This document shows, one piece after another, positions 9,878 through 60,796 of a stretch of DNA of 64,000 nucleotides. Each line of letters opens with the position of its first letter. Position 1 is the stretch's first letter. This stretch comes from Lepidodermella squamata (Eukaryota; Animalia; Gastrotricha), in assembly GCA_047495785.1 (NCBI GenBank), contig JBLDXI010000007.1, positions 2,542,001 to 2,606,000 of the forward strand, in the 5' to 3' direction. The notes under the pieces were generated by a model that made no database searches, was not told the origin of the DNA, and worked only from the letters and a program-made list of their open reading frames with translations. Both the position numbers and the translations under genes were made by a program.

Positions 9878-11144
9878 GGTGTGGATATAATGTTTCTTTT
9901 AAAACGCATAAATCAGCTATGCGGAATGCAAAATTTTCTCGATAATTAGTTTCTACACGGTCGAAAATGGAAATAGCTCATCAATCCCCGCCTTTTAAAT
10001 TAGTAATATCAAAAGCCATGCTGAACAATTAGGTACAATGTAATTATGTATTGTATAACACATGGGCCTCCGTGAATTATTCGAGACATGGCAAATTCCA
10101 CCATGGGTTTTTTTATATAGACCACCGATTCCGCCAGACAGGGTTGACAGGTGCGCAATAGAATTGAACCAGAGAGCGAAGTACCGCTGGGGATGGTAGG
10201 GATCATCCCTACCAGTTCCGGCAGTCCGTACGGTGGGCTCATTCACCATTCACAGACCAAAGGGGGACCCTTATGTTGATTTGTGTAATCCCTACCAGTC
10301 CCAAAGTCCCACTTCGCTCTATGAATTGAACATTCTGAATTTTATTGGGGTGCAATAAAAACGTAGAAAAGTTAACGAATTTTGAATATGTTGGGAAATT
10401 TTTGCATGAGAACCCCATATTCAACCGATATCTTCTGAAATTTATTTTGGTACTAATGCCGCCAAATTATTCTAAAGTAGCCCTTTGACATCAGCGCGTG
10501 CGGTCCAAAATTTGTTTAAAACTTAGACTTCTCTAGTGCGTGCGCGATGACGGCCATAAATGAGGAGCGCGCATTTTCGTTAACTGCCTTTTCTCTTTTT
10601 ATTGCGTATAATTTAATGATGGGTCCACGCATTTAAAGTCGGATCTTATTAATTAAAGGGGAGTTGATTATATAATGCATTTGTCATGATAATCCGCTCA
10701 GATAACACATCCTTGGTGTTTTATAGTTTCCAAGTCTACAACCTCCTCATTGCCTTACAGCCAGCATCCACCGTGTTCAACGATTTTCAATCAAACTCAG
10801 TACATGCCCAGGTTAATTATCCACGAATCGAGAGAAAAACCAAAAGTAAGATGCAAAACGGATTATCTTGATAAATAATTCTATAGGTGTTAGTAGCCAA
10901 TCGATCAAAATACTAGCTAGATAGTCTGAAGCGAGAAACTTCAGTTTGATTTTCTGGAAATCGACGAACTAAAACCAAAGAAGGTCACGTTGCGTGGAGC
11001 GCGCAATTTTTTGTTCGTGTACTAGATCTTTGCGGCAACAGGAAAAAAATGCTGTCAATCAAAAAGTGTTAATAAAGGCCAAATGCAAACTCAGCTGAAA
11101 GAAACACTTTGATTTAAATTCGTAGGAAAGATTGATCTCTGAAA

Positions 11145-14100
11145 ATGGAAGATTTCTTCATTGGTAAGGCTATTCTTATTCTTATTCTTAGCTTTCATCA
11201 GCATTGCAATAGGTTCCGACGATACCTGGGAAGCCGCCGATTATCTGGTCAATGTTTTGCCAATGGGAACAACGCCATATGTGGATACGAAAAGCAATTC
11301 AAAGGGCGATTGCATTATGAAATGTTGCAAGAATGACGCATATCAGGAATGCGATTCTTTCGCCTACAGTGAAGCCAAACAGGCATGCAAGTTGTATGCC
11401 CACCCAAGTTCGCAAAATATGCCAGTTCCGGGCAACGGCAGCTGGAAATCAGACACGGATAATGGTCATCAAGTTTTTTACAAGGTTGAAATCATTGATG
11501 AAGCCGCTCCCATTTCTTATGACTGATTACAGAGCCAATTTTGCCCACCTGGATGGTTTGCTGATAAAATCAACTCACAATGTTACTTCATAGATACGAC
11601 GCCCGTCAACCGTCGTGATGCTTGGGCAGTCTGCGAGAAGCGTTTCATGGCAAGGCTTGCTACGTTTGATTCCCGAGAGCAGCGCGATAGTTTTTACAAG
11701 ATTCTGGATAGCAATTATGCTACAGTTAGTCCGCAAATCTTCTGGACAGGTTACAACCGGTTTACGAGATATCATTGGTCCCGGCCAGTTGAGGAGATTC
11801 CTGGATACATCAAGGGCCATGGTTTCAACTCCGAAGCGAACTATCCCGGCGTTTTCATAAACAAAGCAGGCTTCTATCCTTACCAAAATGCTAAGGAACC
11901 ACAAGTCTGCGCGAGGATTTGCTCCGGTAGCCTCAAAGATAGATGCACAGGGTTCCTGTGGGAAGTTGCAACTGGCCGATGTTGGTTCCAGCGGGCAATG
12001 CCGCGTTATAATTTCGACAACAGAGGAATGATGACAAATTGGACTTACTACCGAATAGGTAACCTCGTCTATCTGCCGCTGTGGGATTTGTATTACTGCT
12101 CTGGTTTTAGTTGGAAGGCCGAAAATGACCATCTACCCCCGATTTACTTTCCCAATAACCGGAAGTGGATTGACCCTAACTCAAGTGCCAATTACATCCA
12201 TCTACCAGTGCCAGCAGATATGCCTTGAGTATGAGTCACACACAATTTCCGCTCTAATCGTTCTCACGTTCGGTTTGACACAGGTACCCGAATTGCGTAA
12301 CCAGCGAGGTAATGAACGGCGGCGTGAATTGTTGGCCAAAGTTTGCAGTCGGCGCAATTGGCACTGGAGTGGGAAGCGCCGAATCGTTGGTTTTGAACGG
12401 TAGGAACTCCTTAACCACTATTGGTCGCCATTCAGCTGCATTGGCGATCTAGATATTATTTCTAATAGCCCGTGTATGGACACCTTTCGTTACCGCGATG
12501 TCTGCCTACGCGCTTCTCTCACTCCAAGGGGGTTCTCTCACTCCTATCGCGGGGACTTTCGATGCAGCCCATGGGGTTTGTCGCAACATCGGTGGCCGAG
12601 TTCCAATGTGATTTAGAATTCAAATATACTAATTCCTATAAGATCTCTGTCCCACAGACCGGAGGATGGTTTCCGCAAGACTACAGCTTGGGGTGCATTG
12701 ATAACCAGCTACAATATAGGTTGGGGATGGCACAACTGCGTTTACAACGGCTCTGCATACGTGACGAGCGACGGCATACCAATGAACGAAACTTCCACAC
12801 TATTTAATTCGTAACTAGATGACTCCAAATAGTTTCAACTATTATACGTCACTTCTAGACCACCGACAAATTTAATTGGCAGCGTGACAGTCAGTAAGGC
12901 AGATTTCAGCGCCACAAGCGAGGGTCTGGGCCATAGATAAAGGTTAAGATGTGAAACTGTCTATCCTCTAATGTTGTCAAAATCTCGCGGTGCAAAGGTC
13001 ACCATCTGCTAAGTAAACAAAAACGTGCTTTTATTAAAGCAACGCGTGGCTAGACCAAAGCATTAAAAAAAAGGTCATTTTTCCTCTCATTTCTACGAAA
13101 ACTGTCTCCTCCAAAATGAATGAAAATGATACGACTGATAGCAATTTTTGCTGGCTTTCAAATGAATCCAAGCTCGTCGCGCCCCAAAATAGAGAAGCCG
13201 CGCTATTGTTAGACAAAAGCGGTCGCAAAATTTCGAAATTGACATTTTTTGACATTTGCCGGGACGGTAAATTTCAAAATTATGAATACAAAAATTCCAA
13301 GAAAATATGCATAATTCACGTCTCATTGAGATCTATCTCCAGATGTAATTTTTAAGAAAATCCGAACCGGCTATCAATTTCTGGAAAAAATTCTGGAGAA
13401 AGCTAGATTTAAGCACACTTACATTAAATATTTTGCAATTGCGCTATGTGACAGGCGTAGTCAACCATGACCAATTTAGCCTAATTCGCCGTAGTCACTA
13501 CTCAGACTGCCATTATCTCCTCGTATTTCTGCCAAATTTAATGGAAATTGGATAAATAGTTCATTCAATGTAAGGGAATTATATGGGGATATCGTCGATC
13601 GTCGAGATTCGAAGCGTGATCCACAAACCCGAAAATTAAATTGTGTATCGAATTTAGCGTAGCAAATATCTTTGCCTGTTCAACTAGGGCTGATTTTTGA
13701 AATTAGAAGATCGCGTGATGCGGTTTGCCTTTGTAAATGGTCAATTCTATAGACTGGAAAGTAATTTGTACGTAAATCAAAAAAATTAATAAGCAGTGTT
13801 ACGTCATTTTTTCAACATGTGTATCGCGGATAAAAGCTGTACACTTTTAATGAATCTACCGTACCGCCCGAAAAGTTACTCAACCTCGTACAGCCATACA
13901 TTTCGGGCAATAGGGTATTAAAAAATCCTATTAAACCCTTTGCTATAACTCGAATTTAAGGAAAACCGCCGTGTCAATATGAGTCGAAATCGGTTAATTT
14001 TTCTAACAAATTGTTACTTGGCAACTTTACCCGCGATTCCAACGAAATGAAACGTTTCATCCACTTATTTAATTCAATATCGAAACTTAATTTAGTTTAA

Positions 14101-16072
14101 TATCGATTGCTTCGATTGCTTCGAAACTGCCAGTTGGTATTTATGGTAATTCGAAGCAATGCTAAGTGTGCACACTAGGCCCGCCTGCTCGTCGCATCGA
14201 TAATATCGTCAGCGTTGTTGAAGAAGTCGGATTCAGGCTTGTATGCGAGTCACTTTTCGAGTTAAACATGTCGGTAACAGCCAGTACTTGAATAATGTAA
14301 CCTTATAGCGGGCAATGTTTTACCGCCCAATAACATGTAAACAACGTTCTAAATGCGATTTTGTCAACGACGGCATCACGGTCACGGCGGCGGCGTTCTC
14401 TTAAAATCTGAAATTACATCAATGTTAGAGGTAACTTGAGTGCCGAAGAGTATAGCCTTATCCAAGCAAGTCAATCTCCTTCCAAGTTAAAATCTCACCT
14501 TTCAGACGTCGCAAACAGATCGAGCAACCTTGAATCGCAATACCTCTACATTACTGTATTGCCTATTTCCAGAAATTGATAGCCGGTTCGGATTTTCTTA
14601 AAAATTACACCTGGAGATAGATCTCAATGAGACGTGAATTATGCATATTTTCTTGGAATTTTTGTATTCATAATTTTGAAATTTACCGTCCCGGCAAATG
14701 TCAAAAAATGTCAATTTCGAAATTTTGCGACCGCTTTTGTCTAACAATAGCGCGGCTTCTCTATTTTGGGGCGCGACGAGCTTGGATTCATTTGAAAGCC
14801 AGCAAAAATTGCTATCAGTCGTATCATTTTCATTCATTTTGGAGGAGACAGTTTTCGTAGAAATGAGAGGAAAAATGACCTTTTTTTTAATGCTTTGGTC
14901 TAGCCACGCGTTGCTTTAATAAAAGCACGTTTTTGTTTACTTAGCAGATGGTGACCTTTGCACCGCGAGATTTTGACAACATTAGAGGATAGACAGTTTC
15001 ACATCTTAACCTTTATCTATGGTCTGGGCCTTCTATATTATGAATACAGCAAGACTGATACCACTGTGTCTAATCATTGCGAGCATCGTAAGAGTGTTAG
15101 CTCGTTTTTGTCTAAGGTATGGCATGTTCTTTCATCGATATAGCTACCTCGAACAACTGGCCGATCAACTGCCGATTCACTCCGTTTGGTCGCGAATACA
15201 TGGGCTTCGCCTCGGTAACAATCAGCGGCAATCTGTGCAAAAGTTGGTCATCAACTCCATACGCTTCAAGCAACGCTCTTTTCGTGGACTACACGGCTTC
15301 GCACAACTACTGCCGCAATCCTGATGCTTCGGTTTTTCCCGAGCCGTGGTGCTACGACTCGGTTTCTAATGTACCAGCTTTATGCATGCCGATTCCGATG
15401 TGTCGTAAGAATTTATCGAAAATATCGCGATTTTCGTTTGTAAAGAATTCTCACCCAGCCGAATCTGACTGGGATCCGATTAATGCGAAGTTGATGGAAG
15501 ATTTGTTCATGGGCTATGCTGTGATGGTTCCGAACCCTGTAACACCCAGCGACTACAACTGGCTGCCGTATAGCAAGCGGTGGAATGCCCTACCCGTCTG
15601 CAGACTACCGATGAATGAATGGTGCGAGATTACGTTCCAGTCAAGCTGTTACAAGTACTTTACAGTGCCGTCAACCTATGATGAAGCGAAGGCCGTTTGC
15701 CAGATGAATGGCTGGCAATTGTTGGAAATCAACTCCCTGGTTGAGCAGTATTTCATACTAACCCACCTTGGATCAATTGCCAGTAAGCGAATCGAAAAGA
15801 TGGAAGCTTTTCACAGATATGAACCATCTTTTGCAGGAATGCGCCAGAAAAGCTACGACGAAAATACGTGGCTTGGCTTGAGCAATGCTGGCGGGAATTG
15901 GGCTTGGGAGTCAGGCCGGCCTGTGACCTATGTGAATTGGGCGAATTCTACAAATACGAGTCTAGGCAATAAGCGTGGCGCAATCAACGTGGCGCAACAG
16001 CTGTTATGGTTCGCAACTACACCAACGACAAAGAAATGGTTCTTTTGCGAACTCGATATGAATAGAATGTGA
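11145..16072 (+). pseudogene. Secreted PAN/C-type lectin/kringle mosaic gene, copy 1, disrupted by a transposon in a coding exon
   Basis: Exons can be spliced in frame via short GT-AG introns (e.g. 11485-11532) and match copies 2-4. The exon encoding ...ATSEGLG/LLYYEYSKTD... is interrupted by the 12932-15021 element. The kringle (NYCRNPD, PWCY) and terminal CTL exons follow. Confidence 0.8.
12932..15021. mobile_element. Non-autonomous DNA transposon, 2090 bp, with 456-bp TIRs and an 8-bp TSD (P-superfamily-like; hAT not excluded)
   Basis: TIRs 12932-13387 and 14566-15021 are almost perfectly complementary (one mismatch seen). Termini are CATAG...CTATG. Direct repeat GTCTGGGC at 12924-12931 and 15022-15029. 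No transposase ORF inside. Confidence 0.95.
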
Positions 16073-19479: not shown

Positions 19480-19820
19480 GGGCTGTTGCAAAAGGTTCCG
19501 ACGTCACCAGGGAAAGCACCGACTACTTGGTAAATGTTTTACCAATATGGGGAAAACGCCTTATTTGGAAACGAAAGGGAGAATGCATAATGAATTGTTA
19601 CAAGAAAGAATGCGATTCTTTCGCCTAGAGTGCCAAACAGGCATTCAAGTTGAATACCCACCCAAGCACGCAAGATATGCCAATTCGGGCAACTGCAGCT
19701 GGAAATCAGACACATATAATGCTTATCAAGTTGTTTTCAATGTTAGAATTGTGATGAAGCTGTACCATTTCGTTTTATGATTAATTACAGAGCCAATTTT
19801 GCCCGCCTGGATGGTTTTCT
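19480..19820 (+). pseudogene. Degenerate 5' fragment of the PAN/CTL/kringle gene family
   Basis: DYLVNVLP, KGECIM, ECDSFA and SWKSDT lie in shifting frames with a stop. The first intron and the start of exon 2 (agccaattttgcccgcctggatgg) are retained, then similarity ends. Confidence 0.85.
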
Positions 19821-47633: not shown

Positions 47634-50600
47634 ATGATAATTTCGTTGTTTGTCGTAACTCTAACTATCAGCAAATTTGCACTGAGTTCAGATGATACGT
47701 GGAAAACTGCAGATTTTCTGGTCAATGTTTTGCCCGTGAGTATATCGCCTTTTGTCGAAGCAAAAACCAATACAAGAGGCGACTGCATCATGATGTGTTA
47801 CAAAAACGACGCGCTCCAAGAATGCAATTCGTTCGCCTACAGCGAAGTTAAAAAATCCTGCAAATTGTACGCGCATCCCAGCACGAAGGTTATGCCCGTA
47901 CCAGGTAATGGCAGCTGGAAATCAGACACTGATAATGGGCATCAAGTATTTTACAAGGTATTTAAATTCGATTTCAATGTTTGCCTCAATTTAAGACCTT
48001 TTCCAGGGCAAATTTTGCCCAGCTGGCTGGTTTGCTGATTTGGACTCATCGCAGTGTTATTATGTCGATTCAACTCCCGTTAACCGTGATGGGGCTTGGT
48101 CTGTTTGTGAGAAACGTCACATGTCCCGTCTGGCTACCTTTGAAACGCCTGAGCAACGCGATAATCTGTACAAAATTCTTGACAGCAATTTTGCCGCCTC
48201 CAGTCCGCAATTCTTCTGGACAGGCTACAATCGTTTCACGAGGTACCACTGGTCTCGCCCGGTCGAAGAAATTCCTGGTTACGTCAAGGGCTATGGTTTC
48301 AACTCAGAAGCGGCTTTCATAAATAAAGCAGGCTTCTATCCTTATCAAAACGCCAAGGAACCCCAAATCTGCGCGAGGATTTGCTCTGGCAGCCTTAAGG
48401 ATAGATGCACTGGTTTCGTCTGGGGAGTCACAACTGGCCGATGTTGGTTCCAGCGGGCAACGCCCCGTTTCAATTTTGACACCAGAGGGATGATGACGAA
48501 TTGGACCTATTACAGAATAGGTGATACAAGCAACAGCTTTGATTGTATTGTTTTATTAATTATCGAATTTTGCTCAGCTGGCAGGCCAAAAATAACTATT
48601 TTTCCCCAAACTGCCTTCGCCGGCGGCGATATATTGGGGCTGTGGCCAGCGAATTCTTTCAGCATATGTAGGCAGTTTTGTCTCAAGTAAGGCCGCCTGT
48701 AAACAATCTAAACATCTCTGTGCCATTTTATTACCGAAACAGGTTTCCCAATTGCGTGGCGGCTGAGTTTGGTGAAGCAGAGCAAGTCTGTTATGCCAAG
48801 TTTCTCTCTGAAGTAAATGGCCCCACACCTGCCCGTGAAGTCTTGTTGATTAATGGTATGTGATTCAAAATAAGTAGTTGAGCCGAATAATTTTAGCGAA
48901 TTTAATTATTTCCCTAAGGTATTATTCCGAACAGCCCATGTTTCGACACTGTTCGCTACCGTGATGTATGCTTGCGCGGTCCTCTCACCCCATACGGAAA
49001 TTATATTGCAGCTCATGGCGTATGCCGTGATATCGGCGGCCGCTTACCAATGTGAAGTTCTACCCATTCTATGAACGTGTGCTTTCAATTGCGTATTTAC
49101 AGTCCCGAGGATGGTTACCGGAAGGGCGGAGCTTGGCACGCCATATTATTCAATGGCGGTGGTGTGACAGGTTGGTTTGACGCAATTTACAACGGAACGG
49201 CTTACGTAGCAAATGATGGTATTCCGATGAACGACACCGAATTTAAACAACCTCTTTTAAAAAAGTAATTAATTTTAAAATCTCAGCTATGCTGTTCAAT
49301 TTTCTGGCTTAGTAATCCGACTAATGTAACTGGCAACGTATGGACGTTCAAAGGTGACATTCATTGGTCCGATCAATACGGGGCCATGATCGTCTATACC
49401 GAGGCAGCGAAGACTGATAACCTAACCAATTTTTGCGAACATCGTGAGAAAATGATCGAATAATGAAAGAAAAATCATTCCCTATAATTTATACTCCAAA
49501 GCTACGTCGAATAACTGGCCGCTTAACTGCCGCTTCACTCCAGCTGGCAGGGAATACATGGGCTTCGCATCGGTGACGATCAATGGCAATACTTGCAAAA
49601 GCTGGGCAACAACTCCTTTCACTTCTAGCAACAGCCTCTTCGTAGACTACACGACTTCGCACAACTATTGTCGCAATCCTGATTCTTCGGTATTACCCGA
49701 GCCGTGGTGCTACGACGCGGTTACAAACGTCCCAACTTTATGCATGCCGCTTCCCATGTGCCGTAAGTTTCTATGAAAGTCATTATTGAATCCGAATTTT
49801 CTAGAATCTAATAGTCCTTATACGCGTTTGAAGGTTCCATTCCGCTTCCCCTAAAAGATAATAACTTAATTTAATAATGTATTCTCGCCACCAATTCAAT
49901 ACTGAATCGAATATTATAGAAGCCTCCGAAGTCAAGCATCGTTGTTCGCTTATCGGTGGACATACATCTTACTCTTTACTCATTACTATTTTCCTCCGCA
50001 ATTTCAACAGCTGAATCGGACTGGGACCCTTTGACTTCGAAACTAATGGAGGATTTGTTCATGAGGTACGCTGTCATGGCTCCGAACCCGGCAGTACAGG
50101 GTGACTACAACTGGCAGCCGTATAGTGAATGGTGGAATGCTCTGCCCGTTTGCAAGCTTCCAATGAATGAATGGTGCGAACTTTCGTTCCGATCAAGCTG
50201 TTACAAGCACTTTCCTCTGTATCAAACGTATGCCGAAGCTAAAGCCTCCTGCCAGGCGAATAACTGGCAGCTGATAGAGATAAATTCTCTCGCTGAGCAG
50301 TACTTCATTAATTCACACATCAATTCCATCGCAAGTAAGTTTTCACTACCAAACATCTGAACTTACCCAATGCCACATTATGAAAAATGTCGAGAAAATT
50401 CTCCATCGAGACAGAAGGAGAACTTTGAAAGCCTGATTCAAGATATTTATTTTTCTCAATCATATAGGGAAACGCCAGAGAGGATTTAATGAATACACAT
50501 GGATTGCGTTGTCGAATGCTAACGGTACCTGGGCTTGGGAATCAGGGACGCCTGTCACCTACACTAGTTGGCAAGGGGATGCTAACATCAATGCAAATAA

Positions 50601-50700
50601 CGCGCGGGCTTCGTTCAACTCATTGACGGGTGCTTGGTGGGTTTTGTCGCCGACGTCAAAAAGATGGTTCTTCTGTGAGCTCGATATGAACAAGTCCTGA
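47634..50700 (+). CDS. Secreted PAN/C-type lectin/kringle mosaic protein, copy 2 (multi-exon)
   Basis: Signal peptide, PAN (CIMMC...CNSFAY...CKLY), CTL start (CPAGW...CY), kringle (NYCRNPD) and terminal CTL (WFFCEL); intron positions shared with paralogs. Confidence 0.85.
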
Positions 50701-51838
50701 AAGACTTTGAAAATGCAAGCCGTGGCAAAATTCGTCCATTTATAACTCGTCTCTCAATATTCCTCAACATAAGTTATTATCAATTCGTGATTTTATTCAA
50801 CTTGTTGAGGTACATACAATCTTTTTGCTGTCATCTTTTGTTAGTGGAGGATGAAGGAGCTGACAAGAGCGTTATTCTAACAACAAAACCAACGTACATT
50901 CTAACAAGAGCGTTATCCATAGATTGCAACGCTTGCGGATTCAAGCTTGTTCCTATTATTTCAATCAATGTAACACATATTGCTGTAAATAAAATTAGAA
51001 GGATCCATGACCAATAATTACGTCCCCAACATAGAGTTGAATAAAAAAATATCTGAATTTCAAAATATAATTGGGCTTCCAGGTCGAAGCCGGGTGGCAA
51101 AAAATGGAACTCTGATTTGGCTTCGAACAAATATTCATTTTACTGGCCTTATTAGCTACAGGTGTGCTTATCTGTCGTTCCTCACGGCATTTTCGCTTTC
51201 AATACTCGAAATAGAGTTGCTTTTATCATATCATCATCTCAATCCTCGTTTTATAACCTCAAAAACGATATCACTATGGGAAAGCATTTTATAGGCGGAA
51301 TGTGCACAGTTGATTCTAACAATTTATTATCGTATGTTCCCAAACGTGGAAGATGGAGGCGATATAGTAGCCAATCGATATATTTGCAGTGCGTTAACTT
51401 GTCACTCCAACTGGAGATTTCCAGTCTTCGCTGATCAGAGCAGCCGATCTATACGATACGATTTGACGTCGAGCATCGATTGTGAAATGAGAAAGAGAAT
51501 GAACCCGAATAAACGGTAGCTCGATGTGATAGTAGCCAATCAATACATCATTGCTGTAGCTTGTGTGCCTCGGTCACGAATACAGGGTGATCTGAAATCT
51601 GAATGGAAGTTTGTTGCTATAACGATGCGGTTTGAGTGGGGATGACACCTGAGACAATCATGCCTCATACTTAACGTTATCGGCAAATTCCTAACCGGGT
51701 GAGCACTATGCAACAACGCCTTTCTAAACACGGAATTGCAATAGAAAATTGCATGCAGGATGAAATCTGCGAACCATAGGTGAGAGTAATCGATAGTTCT
51801 AGTTTTAACAAAATGCTTTCATTGTTGCTAGTATAGAT

Positions 51839-54689
51839 ATGTCTTTTATAGGCAAAAGGATGAATCTACTCTGTATAAACTTGACTATCCTTATTTCATT
51901 CCCAACTATCACTTTAGTGAGATCGGATGATGCGTGGAGTACAGCCGATTACTTGGTCAATGTTTTGCCCATGGGGACAACACCATATGTTGAAACGAGC
52001 GCCACTTCAAAGGGAGAGTGCATTCTGAGCTGTTACCAAAACGACGCGAAACAAGAATGCGATTCGTTCGCCTACAGCCAAGCCAAGAAATCCTGCAAAT
52101 TGTACGCCCATCCCATCACGCAGGTAATGCCAGTTCCAGGTAATGGCAGCTGGATATCAGACACTGATAATGGCCACCAAATATTTTACAAGGTAAGTAC
52201 ATTCGATTTCGCTCTTTCCTGCAGTTCAGGGCATTTTCCAGGGCAAATTTTGTCCACCTGGATGGTTTGCCGACTACGCAACTTCTCAATGTTATTTTGT
52301 TGATTTGACGCCTGTTAATCGGGGTGGTGCCTGGTCCATTTGCGAGAAACGTTTCATGTCACGACTGGCTACCTTTGAAACGCGAGAGCAAAGAAACTAT
52401 CTATACAAAATTCTTGACAATAATTTCGCTGCAGTCAGTCAGCAAATCTTTTGGACCGGATACAACCGCTTCACGAGATACCACTGGTCTCGCCCGGTCG
52501 AAGAAATCCCTGGATACATCAAGGGCTATGGTTTCAACTCCGAGACGAACTATCCCGGCGTGTTCATAAACAAAGCAGGCTTCTATCCTTACCTAAATGC
52601 TAAAGAACCCCAAGCCTGCGCAAAGATCTGTTCAGGAAGTCTCAAAGACAGATGCACTGGTTTCGTTTGGGGAGTCTCAACTAACAGATGTTGGTTCCAG
52701 AGAGCAATGCCTCGTTTTAATTTTGATAACAGAGGGATGATGACAAATTGGACGTACTATCGTATAGGTGATGCGAATTTACGAATCCTAAAAGACAAGT
52801 TTTCTAACAAAGATGTTTTGTATGCAGTCGGGAGGCCAAAAATGACCATATATCCACAATTCGTGTTTCCTGGCAACGATCTAGCATCATCAGCAGTGCC
52901 TGTTACATCGGTTTACCAATGCCAGCAGCTATGTCTGAAGTAAGATCAGCTTGAAGATTAGCATTCTCGATATTTCTGTGATGTAGCTTTCCCAATTGCG
53001 TTGCGGCCGAGTTGATTAACGGCGGTACATCTTGCTACCCCAAGTTTGCAGCTGGCGTATTTGGCAATTCACAACCTGTCCGTGAATCATTAGTATTGAA
53101 CGGTAAGAATAAGACCTATTTCTATTATCTAGTACTTACTCAATGACTTAACATTTCTTAGATGTGATTCCGAACAGCCCGTGCTTCGACACTGTTCGAT
53201 ATCGAGATGTTTGCTTACGGAACACTATTACTCAAAACGGCGATTTTGACGCCGCTCAAAGGGTCTGTCGCGATATTGGAGGTCGCGTGCCTATGTAATC
53301 GAAGGTTTCGAAAAATGAAGTTTAAAATTAGTCGATCTTTCTTAGCCCGGAGGATGGAATTCAAAAGTCTATTGCATGGGGTTCCTACGCCTCCTACGCT
53401 ATCGGTAGGGGTTGGCATAATGGTATTTACAACGGTTCTGCTTATGTTACCACTGACGGCATACCTGTTAACGATACATCTATCGCATTCTCGAAGTAAT
53501 TTTATGAACAAAAAATCTTGGATAAATATTTTCTTTCAGAAATGCCACCAACGTGACAGGGAACGTTATGACATTCATGGGAGCTCTTTCATACACTTCG
53601 CAATTCGGAGGATATGCTTTGATGTATGACGAAGTCGCCAGGGCAAATAACACCATCCCTGTACATTGCGAACATCGTAAGACTTTCTTCTCTTTAAGAA
53701 ACTGTGGGGATTTCTGTGTGATTTTGCAGCTACTGCTAACAACTGGCCGATAGATTGCCGCTTCACTCCGGCAGGTCGAGAGTATATGGGCTTCTCCTCG
53801 GTAACAATCAACGGCAATTTGTGCAAATCTTGGTCAACTACGCCATTCGCTTCTAGCAACACCCTCTTCGTGGACTACACGACTTCGCACAACTATTGCC
53901 GGAACCCTGATTCTTCGGTATTTCCCGAGCCGTGGTGCTACGACTCGATTACAAATATTCCGGCGCAGTGCATGCCTATTCCAATGTGCCGTAAGAAAGG
54001 ATTGAATTCTACGAATTGTCGATTTTCGAAATTTTTCCAGCTGAATCTGACTGGGATCCGGTTAACGCAAAATTAATGGAAGATTTGTACATGGGCTACG
54101 CTGCGATGGTTCCAAACGCTGTCTCTACCGGCGACTACAACTGGCAACCTTACAGCAAGTGGTGGACAGCTCTGCCCGTCTGCAGACTGCCGATGAATGA
54201 GTGGTGTGAGATTTCATTTAAATCAAGCTGCTACAAGGCCTATCCATTTTCTTCTACTTACGACGAGGCGAAAGCGATTTGTCAAATGAACGGTTGGCAG
54301 CTGATAGAAATAAACTCCCTCGCGGAGCAAAACTTCATACAAACAATTTTCGGCTCGATCATAAGTGAGTTCTACCGATAAGATAATGTTATCTTCAGTG
54401 TAACCCAACAAATAAGGAGAAACGGTCTGAGAATACTACAACCTTGTGTTTTGTTTCAGGACTGCGCCAGCAAAGTCTGGGTGACAACAACTGGATCGGA
54501 CTGACAAATTTGGGCGGCAACTGGGCGTGGGAATCTGGCAAGCCTATAACTTATTTGAAGTGGGACGCAACAGCTGCCATTACTGCCGGTAACAGGCGCG
54601 GAGCCTTCCACTCAGGTTCTATGACTTGGTTTGCATATGATGGAACATCCAGAAGAAGGTTCCTTTGTGAACTAGACATGAACAAGTGA
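51839..54689 (+). CDS. Secreted PAN/C-type lectin/kringle mosaic protein, copy 3 (multi-exon)
   Basis: Same exon order and motifs as copy 2. Confidence 0.85.
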
Positions 54690-54754
54690 AAGCCTTGCTC
54701 CATTTGTTAGAACAATTCTCTCCATGCATTCTATGTTCTCAAGATTAGCATTTC

Positions 54755-55055
54755 CATTGTGTTTGAGGTTGTAAGTTGAAAAAAATCCGCACGCTGATTG
54801 GTCAGTTGGCTCGTATCCATGACTCCGCCTTGCTACTTGATCGTGCGATCTATATAATTTGTGGCTTTTATTATTTTTATGAAGGCCGTATCGTAGCACG
54901 CGTTTCCAACAAATGCGTAAAACCATTCATAAAAAGATATTTTTTGCAAACATTTTATGGATCGCACGATCAAGTAGCAAGGCGGAGTCATGGATACGAG
55001 CCAACTGACCAATCAGCGTGCGGATTTTTTTCAACTTACAACCTCAAACACAATG
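54755..55055. mobile_element. MITE, 301 bp, with ~96-bp near-perfect TIRs
   Basis: CATTGTGTTTGAGG...CCTCAAACACAATG; TC on both sides is a possible 2-bp TSD. Confidence 0.85.
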
Positions 55056-55785
55056 TCATATAAACTCATTACGGCATAGGACATGTATAATAGTTTATAA
55101 TCCACCCTCGCTTGTGTGATGATAGGCGCACAGTCTTTGAGTCTGTCAGCCAAAAAATGGAATAAAACTCTTATAATACTGAAAGTACTAATAATACTGA
55201 GGCACACAATCAGAGAAGTGTTCCGGCAACGCTTGAAATGCGAATAGCCTCATTTTAACCACTTTCCTTATATTATTGCCTTATTTTAATATCCCACTTC
55301 CACATTGACATTAGCACCAAACTTGCCGAATAAAATAAAATTCACATAACATCACATAACGTCAATAAAGCAATGGCTGAATTTATCTCGCCAAGTAGAC
55401 GAAATTGGTCCGGCTTTGCCATAATGTCGCTAGGTATTTTCCAGTTTCGCAATTTCGGCTCAACCATCTTTATAATGTTACTGTGATTCGAAATCGCACG
55501 AAAATGGCCCAAAACAAAATGATAAATGATACGCTCAACCTGTATGGATTTTTATCAACCTCTCAGTTACTTTAAATAGCGGAATTTCAAAAGAGTTTGA
55601 GAATTAAAAATCAGATAAAATAATTGAGCATTATATTTGGCGTTGCGTAATTCAAGGAAATCCAAGCCGATTTACACTGGCAAAGGCCCTCATTGATCTG
55701 TCAGTCAACAAAATGGCATCAACGGTACCCCTGCATTCAGACGAACAACAGAAACGAATTTTCTAACGGTTAACTTATTTGCTAG

Positions 55786-55818
55786 GAGTGGCAAACAGGG
55801 TGTTAGTAGCCAATCGAT
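55786..55818 (+). promoter_or_regulatory. Conserved upstream motif (CCAAT box overlapping ATCGAT), shared with lectin-gene upstream regions
   Basis: 30/33 identity to 57614-57646. The last 20 nt are identical to 10886-10905. Related copies at 46633-46652, 51365-51379 and 51530-51544. Confidence 0.6.
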
Positions 55819-56095
55819 AGGAAATACCGAGGCTGGAGAAGGCATGTATAGTTTCACTGGAAACAAATCGAAGAACAAAAGACTCATAGGCATTTCTCCA
55901 CTCTTGTGCTACTTGTTCAAAATTCAAATCTCAAACATATTTCTATGCTGCTGCTAGATAAGACGGGTATGACTGGTTGTCCAGAAGACAGCTCCGAGTA
56001 TTAGGCTTATGCAATCCTACTTTGCATGCGCCATCTTCGCTTATTCTGATGTTTCCATTCGATAATTTGGTGCTTAGTAACATAATAGGTTCAGC

Positions 56096-57301
56096 ATGAA
56101 GATAAAATTTGCTTACTTTCTCATTAATTTGTTGCCACTGGTGATTCACAGCGAGGAAGAGGCAAGCAATACCCTATTTGATCGACTCAAGAGCAGTTTC
56201 TTCGAACACTGCCCAGCCGCTCAATCAAAATATTTGCCTCTAGAGACGATTCGCTGGAACAGATTGACGGGAGAAAACAATGACAACTTCATCACTGTGC
56301 AGGTATCTTTGTCTTTATTTCGTTTTCTCGAGATCAACGACGTCGACCGACGGCTTTCGGTTTTGGGGGAAATAGAATATTTTTGGAATTACCCCTGTCC
56401 GAACATCACCTGCCAGAATCTTTTGGACGGCGACGATTTAGCTGTTTGCAACAGTACAGCGCTACACTTTACGGCTTCAACGCAGGACTATTGGTACCCC
56501 ATTTTGACGCATGTAAATGCATTCGAAAGAGCTCGTCTATCGGCTGATGATCTTACAGCTTTGCCAATGCGGATATTTCCCCTAATGCCAACGGGTTACC
56601 TTTCGCACTTTGCGCGTTTTGACTCAACCTGTAAATCATTTCAATTCAACCAATTCCCCTTTGACTCGTTGAATTGCTCGATTATGCTGGACACGGATGA
56701 TCACTTCGTAGTTTACGACCCGATTTCGCTGGCTATCGACAGTGGTTCGATATCGTCTTTCATAAGAGACGTAGAGCTATGGGAACTCAAAAATCTAGCT
56801 CCTCGGCGGGTTATGATAAAATATGTCGATAGCGACATCCCAACAGCCTACAGCCGAGTTTATTTTTCGATGCTTTACAAGAGGAAGCCGTTCTTCTACA
56901 TCTGCAACACGTTCCTTCCAACAATGCTGCTTTCTGTAGTGCAAATAGCGTCACTTATCGTGCAGCCTGATTCAGGAGAAAGGGCAAACTTATGTGTCAC
57001 GATTATGCTGGCTTACACAGTAATTCTAACTATGATATATGACCAGATACCGCGAACCTCAGAACCTGTCTATTTGGTTTACATGGTTGTTACCAAGTTC
57101 GTGATCGGTGGATTCATCACAGTATACATGATTTTCATCTGGCAGCTTGGTATCAAACCCAAGACGGGCAAAAAGAAGCTCAAAGACACATTTGGTAATT
57201 TGCCGGCCGCGCGAATCGCTGACCTAGCGATAGCTGGCATATCAACGATATCCGTCATAGTTTCCGACGTAATGTATTTCAGTTATATGATGGCTGGGTG
57301 A
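56096..57301 (+). CDS. Divergent pentameric (Cys-loop) ligand-gated ion channel subunit, nAChR/5-HT3-like, intronless, 401 aa
   Basis: Signal peptide, WYP motif, Cys-loop C..FPFD..C, W-E-L, pre-M1 KRKPFFY, DSGER before M2, M2-M3 IPRTS and four TMs. Confidence 0.9.
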   Translation: MKIKFAYFLINLLPLVIHSEEEASNTLFDRLKSSFFEHCPAAQSKYLPLETIRWNRLTGENNDNFITVQVSLSLFRFLEINDVDRRLSVLGEIEYFWNYPCPNITCQNLLDGDDLAVCNSTALHFTASTQDYWYPILTHVNAFERARLSADDLTALPMRIFPLMPTGYLSHFARFDSTCKSFQFNQFPFDSLNCSIMLDTDDHFVVYDPISLAIDSGSISSFIRDVELWELKNLAPRRVMIKYVDSDIPTAYSRVYFSMLYKRKPFFYICNTFLPTMLLSVVQIASLIVQPDSGERANLCVTIMLAYTVILTMIYDQIPRTSEPVYLVYMVVTKFVIGGFITVYMIFIWQLGIKPKTGKKKLKDTFGNLPAARIADLAIAGISTISVIVSDVMYFSYMMAG

Positions 57302-57933
57302 TTTTCTCTCGATCGCTGTCCTCTTATGATTTCCTATCTTTCCCCCTTGAAGCTTCATTGAATATTTAAAAAACAAATAAAGAAAAAGAAATGAACAATA
57401 TGCTCCATATAACAGGCTGCAATTTCGGATCTCGGAAGTTCGCTGTTTTGAGCTTTCGAATGACGAGAAATAAGCTTTTTATTGCCGTTTATTGTTTAAT
57501 ATCACCGCATTTGGTCATCATTCATCATCTACCAAGCCGATTAGTAAATGCTGTAAATGTTTCAAGTCCATCTCCTTCCTAAGCTACTTGTTCAGTTTAC
57601 GATGATGAGCTATGAGTGGCACACAGGGTGTAACTAGCCAATCGATTAAGATTACCGCAGTTGAAGTAAGACTAATACATTAAAAACACAACAAACTTGG
57701 GAGATTTTTCGTGATGAAAATATACGTCCTATGAAGGCGAGGTTTCCAAGAGTAGACAGACAGAAAATCGTTGCTCGATCAACAATTTTGAGAGTCATCA
57801 ATTCAATAAAAAGATTCACGCTGGTAGTGACACTCACGCAAGAAAATTGAAGCATCGCTCACATCGATTGAAGCAAAAAATTAGCAGGAAGCAACGATTT
57901 AGTCTTGCGTTCTTGTTTTACCAACTTTCGACA

Positions 57934-60796
57934 ATGATTAAGCTTTCCGTAATTGGGAAAACCATCATTGTATCAATACTCAGCAACGTAGCAATGAATT
58001 CCAACGATACGTGGACAACAGCAGATTATCTTATGAATGTCCTACCCATGGGCATATCGCCTTTTGTCGAAACGAAAACCAAGTCAAAGGGCGAATGTAT
58101 CATGAAGTGTTACAAAAACGATGCAAAAGAAGAATGCGATTCTTTCGCCTACAGCGAAATTAAACAGTCCTGCAAATTGTACACGCATCCGAGTACGCAA
58201 AATATGCCAGTTCCAGGTAATGGCAGCTGGCTGTCGGACACTGATAATGGCCATCAAGTGTTTTACAAGGTGCAAGGTTTTGCAAATCTCATTATATCAT
58301 TCTATCAATTTTGAACTTAGAGCAAATTTTGCCCGCCTGGCTGGTTCGCTGATTTCAATACTTCTCAATGCTACTTCATAGATACGACGCCCGTTAACCG
58401 CAGAGATGCCTGGGCGGTTTGTGAGAGACGTTTCATGTCGCGTCTGGCTACCTTCGAATCGGCGGAGCAACGTGACAATTTTTACGCAATTCTTGACAGC
58501 AACTTTGCGGCAGTCAGTCCTCAAATTTTCTGGACGGGGTACAACCGTTTTACAAGGTTCCATTGGTCACGGCCAGTCGAAGAAATCCCTGGATACGTCA
58601 AGGGCTACGGCTTTAATAGCGAATCGTCTTACCCTGGTGTTTTTATCAATAAAGCAGGCTTCTATCCTTATCCGAATGCTAAGGACCCTCAAGTCTGCGC
58701 AAGGATTTGCTCTGGCAGCCTCAAAGATAGATGCACGGGTTTCCTGTGGGAAGTCATAAATGGTAGATGTTGGTTTCAGCGAGCAGTGCCCCAATACAAC
58801 TTTGACATTGGAGTCAGAGGAATGATGACTAATTGGACTTATTACAGGCTAGGTAACTTGGTAATAATATTGAGCCCGATTTTTAACGGTTAATGCCCTT
58901 TACAGCCGGAAGGCCGCAAATGACAATATATCCACGATATACTTTTCCTAACAACGGTATAACTGCGGCGAAAATTCCGATAACATCTACATATCAGTGC
59001 CAGCAGATATGCCTCAGGTAAAATTGAACTAAAAAAGAATTTAACTTAAGCCTGTTTATCAGTTACCCTAATTGTGTAACCAGCGAGATTATGGACGGCG
59101 GGGCGAATTGTTGGCCGAAGTTTTTAATGGCTAATATAGCAGGTACTATAGTTGCTAATGCCGAATCCTTAGTATTGAACGGTAGGGTTTAATTTCATGG
59201 TTAATTCATAATGTTTCTTGCACGCTTCTTCCTTGACAGATATCCTTCCGAATAGTCCGTGCTTTGACACCGTTAGATATCGCGATGTCTGCTTGCGAGC
59301 AGCTCTCACCCCGAATGGAAATTACGACTCGTCTCATGGCACATGTCGCGATATCGGCGGCCGCGTACCAATGTGAGGCTCTATATTCTCTCGTGTGATT
59401 TTTGTGATTGATTATCATGCCAGCCCGGAGGATGGTTATAGGAAAGCTGCGGCTTGGACCGCCATTATGGATAGCTACAATACTGGAACGGGTTGGCACG
59501 ACGGAATATACAACGGAACAATGTACGTAACAAATGATGGTTTCCCAGTGAACGACACCAACATGAACACTTGGCCTGTTATGAAAAAGTAATTTGAGTG
59601 TGATATATTGAATCAGTTTTACATGTGACCCGCACAGTACCACGACTACTAACATAACTGGTAATGTTCTAACGAATAAGGGGGATAAAGCTCTGTCTGG
59701 CACCGCTGGTTTTACGCTTCAGTATACTGAGACAGCCAAGACAGACACAACTTTGTCAACTCAATGTGAACATCGTGAGAGAATATTACAGCTTCACGAT
59801 TGAAGACTTGATTTCTTCACTTTCTACAAAGCTACGTCGAACAGCTGGCCGCTCAACTGCCGATTCACTCCAGCAGGCCGAGAATACATGGGTTCCGCAT
59901 CGACAACCATCAACGGCAATGCCTGCAAAACATGGTCATCTACGCCATTCACAGCAAAACGCTTGTTCGTGGACTACACGATTTCTCACAATTACTGCCG
60001 AAATCCTGATGCTTCTGTACTACCGGAGCCCTGGTGTTACGACTCGGCCACGAATCTGCCTACTCTGTGCTATCCGATTCCAATGTGCCGTAAGATTGAG
60101 ATTTTCAACATCTGCATTTCGAGAACAATTTATTTCCAGCGGAATCTGACTGGGATCCGAATACTGCGAAGCTGATGGAAGACCTGTTCATGGGCTATGC
60201 TGTAGTGACTCCGAACCCGGCAGTACAGGGTGACTACAACTGGCAGCCGTATAGTAAGTGGTGGAATGCTCTGCCCGTCTGCCGCCTACCGATGAATGAA
60301 TGGTGCGAGATTTCGTTCCGATCAAGCTGTTACAAACACTTCCCACTGTATCAAACGTATGACGAGGCAAAAGTCACCTGCCAGATGAATGGCTGGCAGC
60401 TGCTGGAGATAAATTCCCTCGCTGAGCAATATTTCATCCATACCCACGTTAATTCGATCGCAAGTGAGTATATTTTGATTGCTTATTCTAGTGACAGCGG
60501 TAAAATTGTGTTATTATGCAAAATTACGAAAGGCTTCAAATAATGATTTATATTTCCTTAAAGGAAGGCGTCAGAAAGGACCTAATGAGCATACAATGCT
60601 TGGGCTCACCAATGCCAACGGTACCTGGGTGTGGGAATCGGGCAGGCCTGCTACGTACACTAACTGGGATGTGAACGCTGGTCAAGCTAATCCCAACAGA
60701 CGAGCGTACGTTAATGCGTTTTCAAGCGCTTGGTTTACCATGGACCCGACTATAAAGAGATGGTTTTTTTGCGAGCTTGAGATGTTCAGATCATAA
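57934..60796 (+). CDS. Secreted PAN/C-type lectin/kringle mosaic protein, copy 4 (multi-exon)
   Basis: ATG at 57934 (MIKLSVIGKTIIVSIL); same exon order and motifs as copies 2 and 3. Confidence 0.85.

Follow-up and report, generated by a model that had tools for sequence, protein, structure and literature searches.

We analysed a 64,000-nucleotide stretch of the genome of the gastrotrich Lepidodermella squamata (contig JBLDXI010000007.1, positions 2,542,001 to 2,606,000; hereafter the window, with a G+C content of about 42%), in which four tandem paralogous genes on the + strand encode mosaic proteins built from PAN/apple, kringle and C-type lectin-like domains (CTLDs). One CTLD in these proteins is probably discontinuous: its N-terminal half (the N-half) and a segment that follows the kringle (the tail) would refold in one chain around a cassette of four whole domains, forming a disulfide-locked clasp. 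A first-pass annotation, made by reading the sequence, had already suggested that the post-kringle segment completes the first lectin domain and that four domains are inserted in one of its loops; this suggestion gains support from the predicted structure of a paralog, the parity of the cysteines (Cys), the conservation of both pieces and their co-occurrence in relatives.

As reconstructed here, the product of each gene would be a secreted mosaic of some 770 residues. The N-half would contribute strands b0 and b1, helices a1 and a2, and strand b2. A cassette of about 390 residues, consisting of two PAN domains, a complete CTLD and a kringle, would then occupy the place of the long loop region, where the calcium and sugar site usually lies, and the tail, 52-54 residues long, would supply strands b3-b5 and the Cys partner of the Cys in helix 1.

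Between 47.6 and 60.8 kb the + strand carries three runs of short open segments, and every motif quoted in the first-pass annotation was found there in stop-free frames. The exon model of gene 1, the first of these runs, was obtained by enumerating the GT-AG pairs that keep the frame open. It comprises 10 exons separated by GT-AG introns that are 48-63 nt long, apart from a single one of 248 nt; the junction between E9 and E10 is ambiguous, because three GT-AG splice pairs fit. The exons of gene 1 and the parts of the protein that they encode are as follows.

47634-47957, 48007-48520, 48578-48686, 48743-48855 and 48919-49051, + strand: exons E1-E5 of gene 1, splice model.
49103-49264, 49313-49443, 49502-49762, 50011-50334 and 50468-50700, + strand: exons E6-E10 of gene 1, splice model.
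47634-47957, + strand: exon 1, signal peptide and PAN/apple domain 1, with 4 Cys (Pfam PAN_1, E 1.5e-6; 28.4 bits against a gathering cut-off of 21.4).
48007-48297, + strand: N-half of the proposed split CTLD, with b0, b1, a1, a2, b2, the WTGY motif and 3 Cys (family profile, hhalign).
48298-48520, + strand: inserted domain 1, PAN 2, with 4 Cys (Pfam PAN_1, E 6e-4, in the second half of E2).
48578-48686 and 48743-48855, + strand: inserted domain 2, PAN 3, exons 3 and 4, with 4 Cys (matches the third PAN_1 stretch of an intronless paralog).
48919-49051, 49103-49264 and 49313-49443, + strand: inserted domain 3, a divergent complete CTLD, exons 5-7, with 4 Cys (counterpart on metagenome contig L004).
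49502-49762, + strand: inserted domain 4, kringle, exon 8, with 6 Cys (Pfam Kringle, E 1.9e-12; 47.7 bits against a gathering cut-off of 34.3; Foldseek matches to solved kringles).
50011-50174, + strand: tail, the proposed CTLD C-half b3-b4-b5, with one invariant Cys and one invariant Trp (alignment, paralog model).
50175-50700, + strand: C-terminal complete CTLD followed by a stop codon, with exon 9 running to 50334 and exon 10 starting at 50468 (Pfam Lectin_C in both pieces).

The order is thus signal peptide, PAN, CTLD N-half, PAN, PAN, complete CTLD, kringle, tail and complete CTLD. The order given in the first-pass annotation was recovered from the exon frames, from exon-by-exon Pfam scans and from paralogs without introns that carry the series in a single open reading frame (ORF). 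All searches with the window genes were made with single exons or stop-free stretches. In the exon-by-exon scan, Lectin_C was matched by E9 (E 2.8e-3) and E10 (E 1.4e-5), and Pfam returned no match for the N-half (the first 97 codons of exon 2) or for the middle CTLD (exons 5-7). The counterpart of the middle domain on a metagenome contig, L004:5114-5521, aligns with the entire Lectin_C profile (E 1.2e-7), which indicates that the inserted lectin domain is complete.

The database ORFs of relatives end just past the kringle, which would suit an artefact of the gene model in which N-half and tail belong to separate genes or to alternative transcripts and are never joined. We regard this as very improbable and reject it, since the full series occurs in single intronless ORFs. 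Two such paralogs were found in the 121-Mb animal assembly with small introns to which the window belongs: L001:3644-5989, - strand (781 residues), and L002:2094-4424, + strand (776 residues). By Pfam, they contain three PAN stretches (the PAN_1 stretches of an intronless paralog total 60.7 bits), one kringle and a C-terminal Lectin_C, and their kringle-to-tail junction, PMC-PE, is identical to the one predicted for gene 1. Because they carry the same series, the exon order is not an artefact of splicing. The early stops of the relatives are also explained. A profile of exon 2 compared with 1.84 billion representative proteins gave 15 matches at E 1e-3, seven of which (P0001-P0007, from metagenome contigs of four samples) are members of the family, none of these seven being a named protein. 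Three of the seven end a few residues past the kringle, with RK after PMC, as fits read-through of a conserved intron with a GTAAG donor, and tail and last CTLD lie just downstream of the kringle on all four metagenome contigs examined. The architecture and the kringle-tail intron are therefore conserved beyond this genome. In addition, only exon 1 carries a signal peptide, which argues against separate genes.

The identity of the first lectin piece was established by profile comparison. With a profile built from 16 family sequences, 86 solved CTLDs were retrieved at E up to 1 (best E 6.9e-6), and positions 2-80 of the N-half profile always align to the first ~75 residues of the CTLD chain. 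With hhalign against a small CTLD profile, the probability is 95.8% (E 7.6e-9), again over the N-half only; as a single sequence, the N-half shows a weak match to the N-halves of snaclecs (E 0.018). It has the long-form hairpin Cys pair, the helix-1 Cys, two helices and a WIGL-type strand b2, and it ends past this strand and a conserved W-x-R-P-V-E-E-I-P-G-Y, at the point where an ordinary CTLD would enter its long loop region. Invariant residues are the helix-1 Cys, the Trp and Gly of WTGY and, in the tail, its Trp and its Cys; both of these Cys are shared by every aligned copy. By these sequence features, the first lectin piece is a genuine N-terminal half of a CTLD and contains no more of the domain than that.

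The structure was modelled with AlphaFold2 on residues 1-639 of the intronless paralog L001, with the last CTLD removed. MAFFT tended to assign fragment rows to the wrong one among the repeated PAN and CTLD domains, and the alignment for this model, the second one made, contains the 72 rows whose placement agreed with tblastn. The mean predicted local distance difference test score (pLDDT) was 67.8. In the N-half, b0 (117-119), b1 (124-134), a1 (135-144), a2 (156-169) and b2 (177-182) were modelled with block-mean pLDDT of 76-92 (blocks 101-180); in the tail, strands 607-612, 617-622 and 627-635, which contain the invariant Trp 619 and Cys 632, reached 63-80 (blocks 601-639). The middle CTLD was poorly modelled, mostly with pLDDT below 50.

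When this model was compared with solved structures by VIA-align, all of the 50 top matches were CTLDs, aligned over model residues 109..638 with Z of 13.5-15.1. Single-domain chains account for 47 of them, and the match of the other three (6inn, 5ao5 and 5ao6) involves a single CTLD within a larger chain. Between 99 and 138 residues were aligned per entry, that is, all or nearly all of a CTLD; examples are 5f2q_B, with 128 of 135 residues at 2.9 A, and 1ukm_B, with 103 of 124 at 1.9 A. The N-half has at most about 92 residues and the alignments reach 120-130 (2.6-3.2 A), so the remaining 30-40 residues must lie beyond the N-half, and the alignment ends at the tail. Foldseek works by linear alignment and puts other matches first, namely apple domains of factor XI, plasminogen, fragments of hepatocyte growth factor (HGF) and kringles (the latter at a template modelling score of 0.7), and in this way confirms the PAN and kringle folds. 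The first-pass annotation had proposed AlphaFold as a check on whether the two pieces form one CTLD fold; they do so in the predicted model of paralog L001, the only protein for which the complete fold in three dimensions was seen.

The numbers of cysteines are consistent with the pairing. Counted by exon in gene 1, they are 4 in PAN 1, 3 in the N-half, 4 in each of the next two PAN domains, 4 in the middle CTLD, 6 in the kringle, 1 in the tail and 4 in the last CTLD. N-half and tail are the sole parts with odd counts, and together (3+1) they have the 4 found in each complete CTLD, which supports the pairing. The core C1-C4 disulfide would then join the helix-1 Cys to the tail Cys, as the parity of the sequence allows.

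Selection was estimated from the four window paralogs as mean proportions of nonsynonymous over synonymous differences (pN/pS, Nei-Gojobori count, 3-6 pairs), with synonymous sites near saturation. The conserved parts are PAN 2 (0.13, the lowest), the N-half (0.16), the tail (0.19) and the kringle (0.22), whereas the variable exons, at 0.35-0.60, encode PAN 3 and the loop-bearing halves of both complete CTLDs. PAN 3 shows 46-56% amino-acid identity between paralogs and pN/pS of 0.38-0.60. By this measure, N-half and tail are better conserved than the complete CTLDs. Moreover, all relatives that were checked have the tail behind their kringle, both the intronless paralogs and those on the four metagenome contigs.

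Several points weaken the reading of a split domain that closes within one chain. The modelled paralog is ~35% identical to the window proteins. The alignment rows for N-half and tail were unpaired fragments, so the predicted pairing rests on the fold knowledge of the network and not on covariation. A first AlphaFold2 run, with a 780-residue translation, gave a mean pLDDT of 48.8, with nearly all residues past 354 below 50; this low confidence is attributed to an alignment with only three near-identical rows over the C-terminal part. The junctions are also poorly modelled in the second run, with residues 182-194 below 50 and, on the tail side, 590-604 in blocks averaging 45 and 63. At the level of sequence, a tail profile of 28 sequences, in which a Trp, an Ala and the Cys are invariant and an ESDW start is nearly so, had zero matches among solved structures at E up to 10. 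Neither hhalign nor hmmsearch, run against CTLD profiles and proteins, aligned the tail to a CTLD C-half, and they returned only spurious matches to helix 1. The likeness of the tail to a CTLD C-half is one of pattern: a hydrophobic strand, an aromatic-x-Trp and a Cys 13 residues past the Trp. Finally, a monomer model is compatible also with completion of the CTLD between chains.

The lack of sequence similarity between the tail and CTLD C-halves, the unpaired rows and the failure of the first prediction would all be in line with another explanation, namely that the first piece is a relic of a truncated CTLD, that the tail has no relation to it and serves as a linker or caps the last CTLD, and that their joint fold is an artefact of a network inclined to complete folds it knows. 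This appears improbable to us: a relic would not rank among the most conserved parts of the protein, it would not retain an invariant unpaired Cys on each side of the cassette, and the two pieces do remain together in distant relatives. Half a CTLD, without part of its hydrophobic core, is also unlikely to be stable alone.

A further alternative accepts the complete fold and places it between chains, with the tail of one molecule completing the N-half of another, in disulfide-linked dimers or head-to-tail chains. The snaclecs, which swap their long loop between subunits, are best or among the best matches of the N-half in sequence and structure, and completion between chains would be an extreme form of that swapping; the 390-residue insert permits both geometries, and the mature chain of the intronless subfamily contains 35 Cys, an odd number that would suit an interchain bond. 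However, the window genes have an even Cys count, and in the monomer model a single chain closes the domain with fair confidence. On balance we consider exchange between chains unlikely, though somewhat less so than a relic, and we infer that the N-half folds with the tail of its own chain. The split fold could otherwise be a self-assembly device that builds disulfide-linked rings or fibres displaying arrays of variable PAN and lectin modules, a proposal to which we give a similarly low weight. To our knowledge, polymerisation by completion of a split lectin fold between chains has been described for no lectin.

Concerning function, the EPN, QPD and WND motifs were not seen when the exon translations of the four window genes were read over the split domain and both complete CTLDs, no dedicated motif scan having been run. 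This agrees with the first-pass annotation, as does the lack of protease and transmembrane segments: the ORFs end with a CTLD and no protease family appeared in any Pfam scan, and no transmembrane segment was seen in the exon translations of the four genes, which were read without a dedicated transmembrane scan. The Cys pair of the C2-C3 disulfide of the long loop region was likewise not seen in the CTLDs of the window genes on reading these translations. Two other assignments were rejected: a classical calcium-dependent sugar-binding lectin, as the motifs were not seen in these translations, and a protease-type relative of plasminogen, as no protease domain was seen.

With the cassette in place of the sugar-binding loop and no EPN, QPD or WND motif seen, the split domain would no longer be a classical lectin and is probably a structural clasp. 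The predicted clasp would bring together PAN 2 and the kringle, with which the cassette begins and ends, and would hold the next complete CTLD nearby. Recognition would then fall to the parts that evolve fast, namely PAN 3 and, in both complete CTLDs, the loop halves. Since the family is large and tandemly expanded, we might guess, by analogy, that its members bind varied targets such as microbes, food or mates.

In a subfamily on contig 24 (L044:3600-4193, + strand, and L045:7618-8214, + strand), the last CTLD retains EPN or QPD together with the C2-C3 Cys pair. Because these relatives retain the motifs, sugar binding may survive in some branches of the family.

Among known proteins, the N-half is matched best in sequence by the snaclecs (echicetin, convulxin, rhodocetin and EMS16), which also lead the structural matches to the reassembled domain. 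Like the split CTLD, they are of the long form with an extra N-terminal hairpin disulfide, and their long loop region leaves the core and carries no sugar site. Their loop, however, has about 20-30 residues and swaps into the partner subunit, whereas here about 390 residues and four whole domains take its place; in addition, the second core disulfide (C2-C3) is absent from the split CTLD. The family of plasminogen and HGF, which with the apple domains of factor XI and prekallikrein gave the top Foldseek matches of the model, also combines PAN and kringle folds in one secreted chain. The window proteins differ from it in having no serine protease, a single kringle, and PAN and kringle domains that are not adjacent and that lie inside a CTLD, a domain that the plasminogen and HGF family does not have.

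The mannose-receptor family (MRC1, Endo180, PLA2R and DEC-205), which appears among the sequence and structure matches, comprises secreted or surface mosaics of several CTLDs with a kringle-like FNII domain; unlike the window proteins, these are membrane proteins with their domains in series and each CTLD continuous. C-type lectin folds tolerate inserts between core strands, as in Mtd and TvpA of diversity-generating retroelements and in formylglycine-generating enzymes, where the inserts are loops or small subdomains of bacterial or phage proteins and not four autonomous domains. By language-model features, the nearest ESM Atlas clusters (0.92-0.93) are small secreted PAN and CTLD proteins (PAN_1 plus Lectin_C) of molluscs and other invertebrates, which, in contrast to the window proteins, have 230-270 residues, lack a kringle and give no hint of a split domain.

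The remaining window genes were located with tblastn, each exon of gene 1 serving as a query against the window. The first-pass annotation had placed the family at 47634-60796; genes 1 to 3 are indeed there, and a fourth copy, outside that range, lies upstream, so that the window contains four tandem copies and not three.

51839-54689, + strand: gene 2, the same exon series as gene 1, with the N-half at 52242-52532 and the tail at 54043-54204 (tblastn, open frames).
57934-60796, + strand: gene 3, the same exon series as gene 1, with the N-half at 58321-58611 and the tail at 60142-60303 (tblastn, open frames).
11143-16069, + strand: gene 4, the fourth paralog, with the N-half at 11536-11823 and the tail at 15461-15622 (tblastn).

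Gene 4 may be decaying: no in-frame ATG is present in its exon 1, its exon 5 is matched in two frames, and exons 6 and 7 lie about 2.2 kb apart. Its open frame at 15116-16069 encodes kringle, tail and CTLD, with Pfam matches to Kringle and Lectin_C; this part is one open frame of 318 codons that includes two in-frame introns. At 19488-19738 (+ strand), outside all four genes, there is one more exon that resembles PAN and shares 42% identity with exon 1 of gene 1. Between genes 2 and 3, a single-exon gene for a Cys-loop channel occupies 56096-57301 (+ strand), and on an unrelated metagenome contig a Cys-loop channel gene, L004:6631-7479 (- strand), directly adjoins a family member. The channel gene beside the lectin-kringle family may represent a conserved neighbourhood.

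In the whole assembly, at least 36 matches of the tail type (exon 9) and at least 76 of the N-half type (exon 2) were obtained, numbers which indicate that the family is large. Its intronless subfamily includes paired copies about 92% identical on contigs 7 and 32 (L001 and L002), as well as a truncated copy, L003:2889-3401, that starts about 90 bp downstream of an ORF of 170 codons; an origin as retrocopies is possible. In L056:2874-3314 (- strand), L063:2674-3132 (- strand) and L064:3836-4294 (+ strand), the kringle-tail intron is in frame and stop-free, and kringle and tail form one open stretch, a situation that may mislead ORF-based annotation. On the contig of P0006 (L070:1888-2140), the tail shifts frame right before its Cys, as a result of either an assembly error or a real frameshift.

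Full-text literature searches yielded no account of a CTLD into which whole domains are inserted. The ESM Atlas contained no cluster with this architecture and no model of the protein, and the 780-residue translation of the intronless paralog, entered without its Met, found no match in a word-based protein search. The earlier remark that the architecture is undescribed thus held in the literature, in the ESM Atlas and in the protein collections searched. The component domains are ordinary, and it is their nesting that is the new feature.

Discontinuous domains usually carry one inserted domain. If our reading is true, a lectin fold of 130 residues that still closes with four autonomous domains inside it would lie at the extreme, and the position of the insertion, exactly at the calcium- and sugar-binding loop, suggests a route by which a binding domain may become a structural clasp. 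The family also has consequences for annotation: Pfam detects one of the three CTLDs, so that pipelines relying on domains will mislabel these genes, and ORF callers cut them past the kringle. As a large, tandemly expanded family with fast-evolving modules, these proteins are a candidate recognition repertoire in a poorly studied group of animals.

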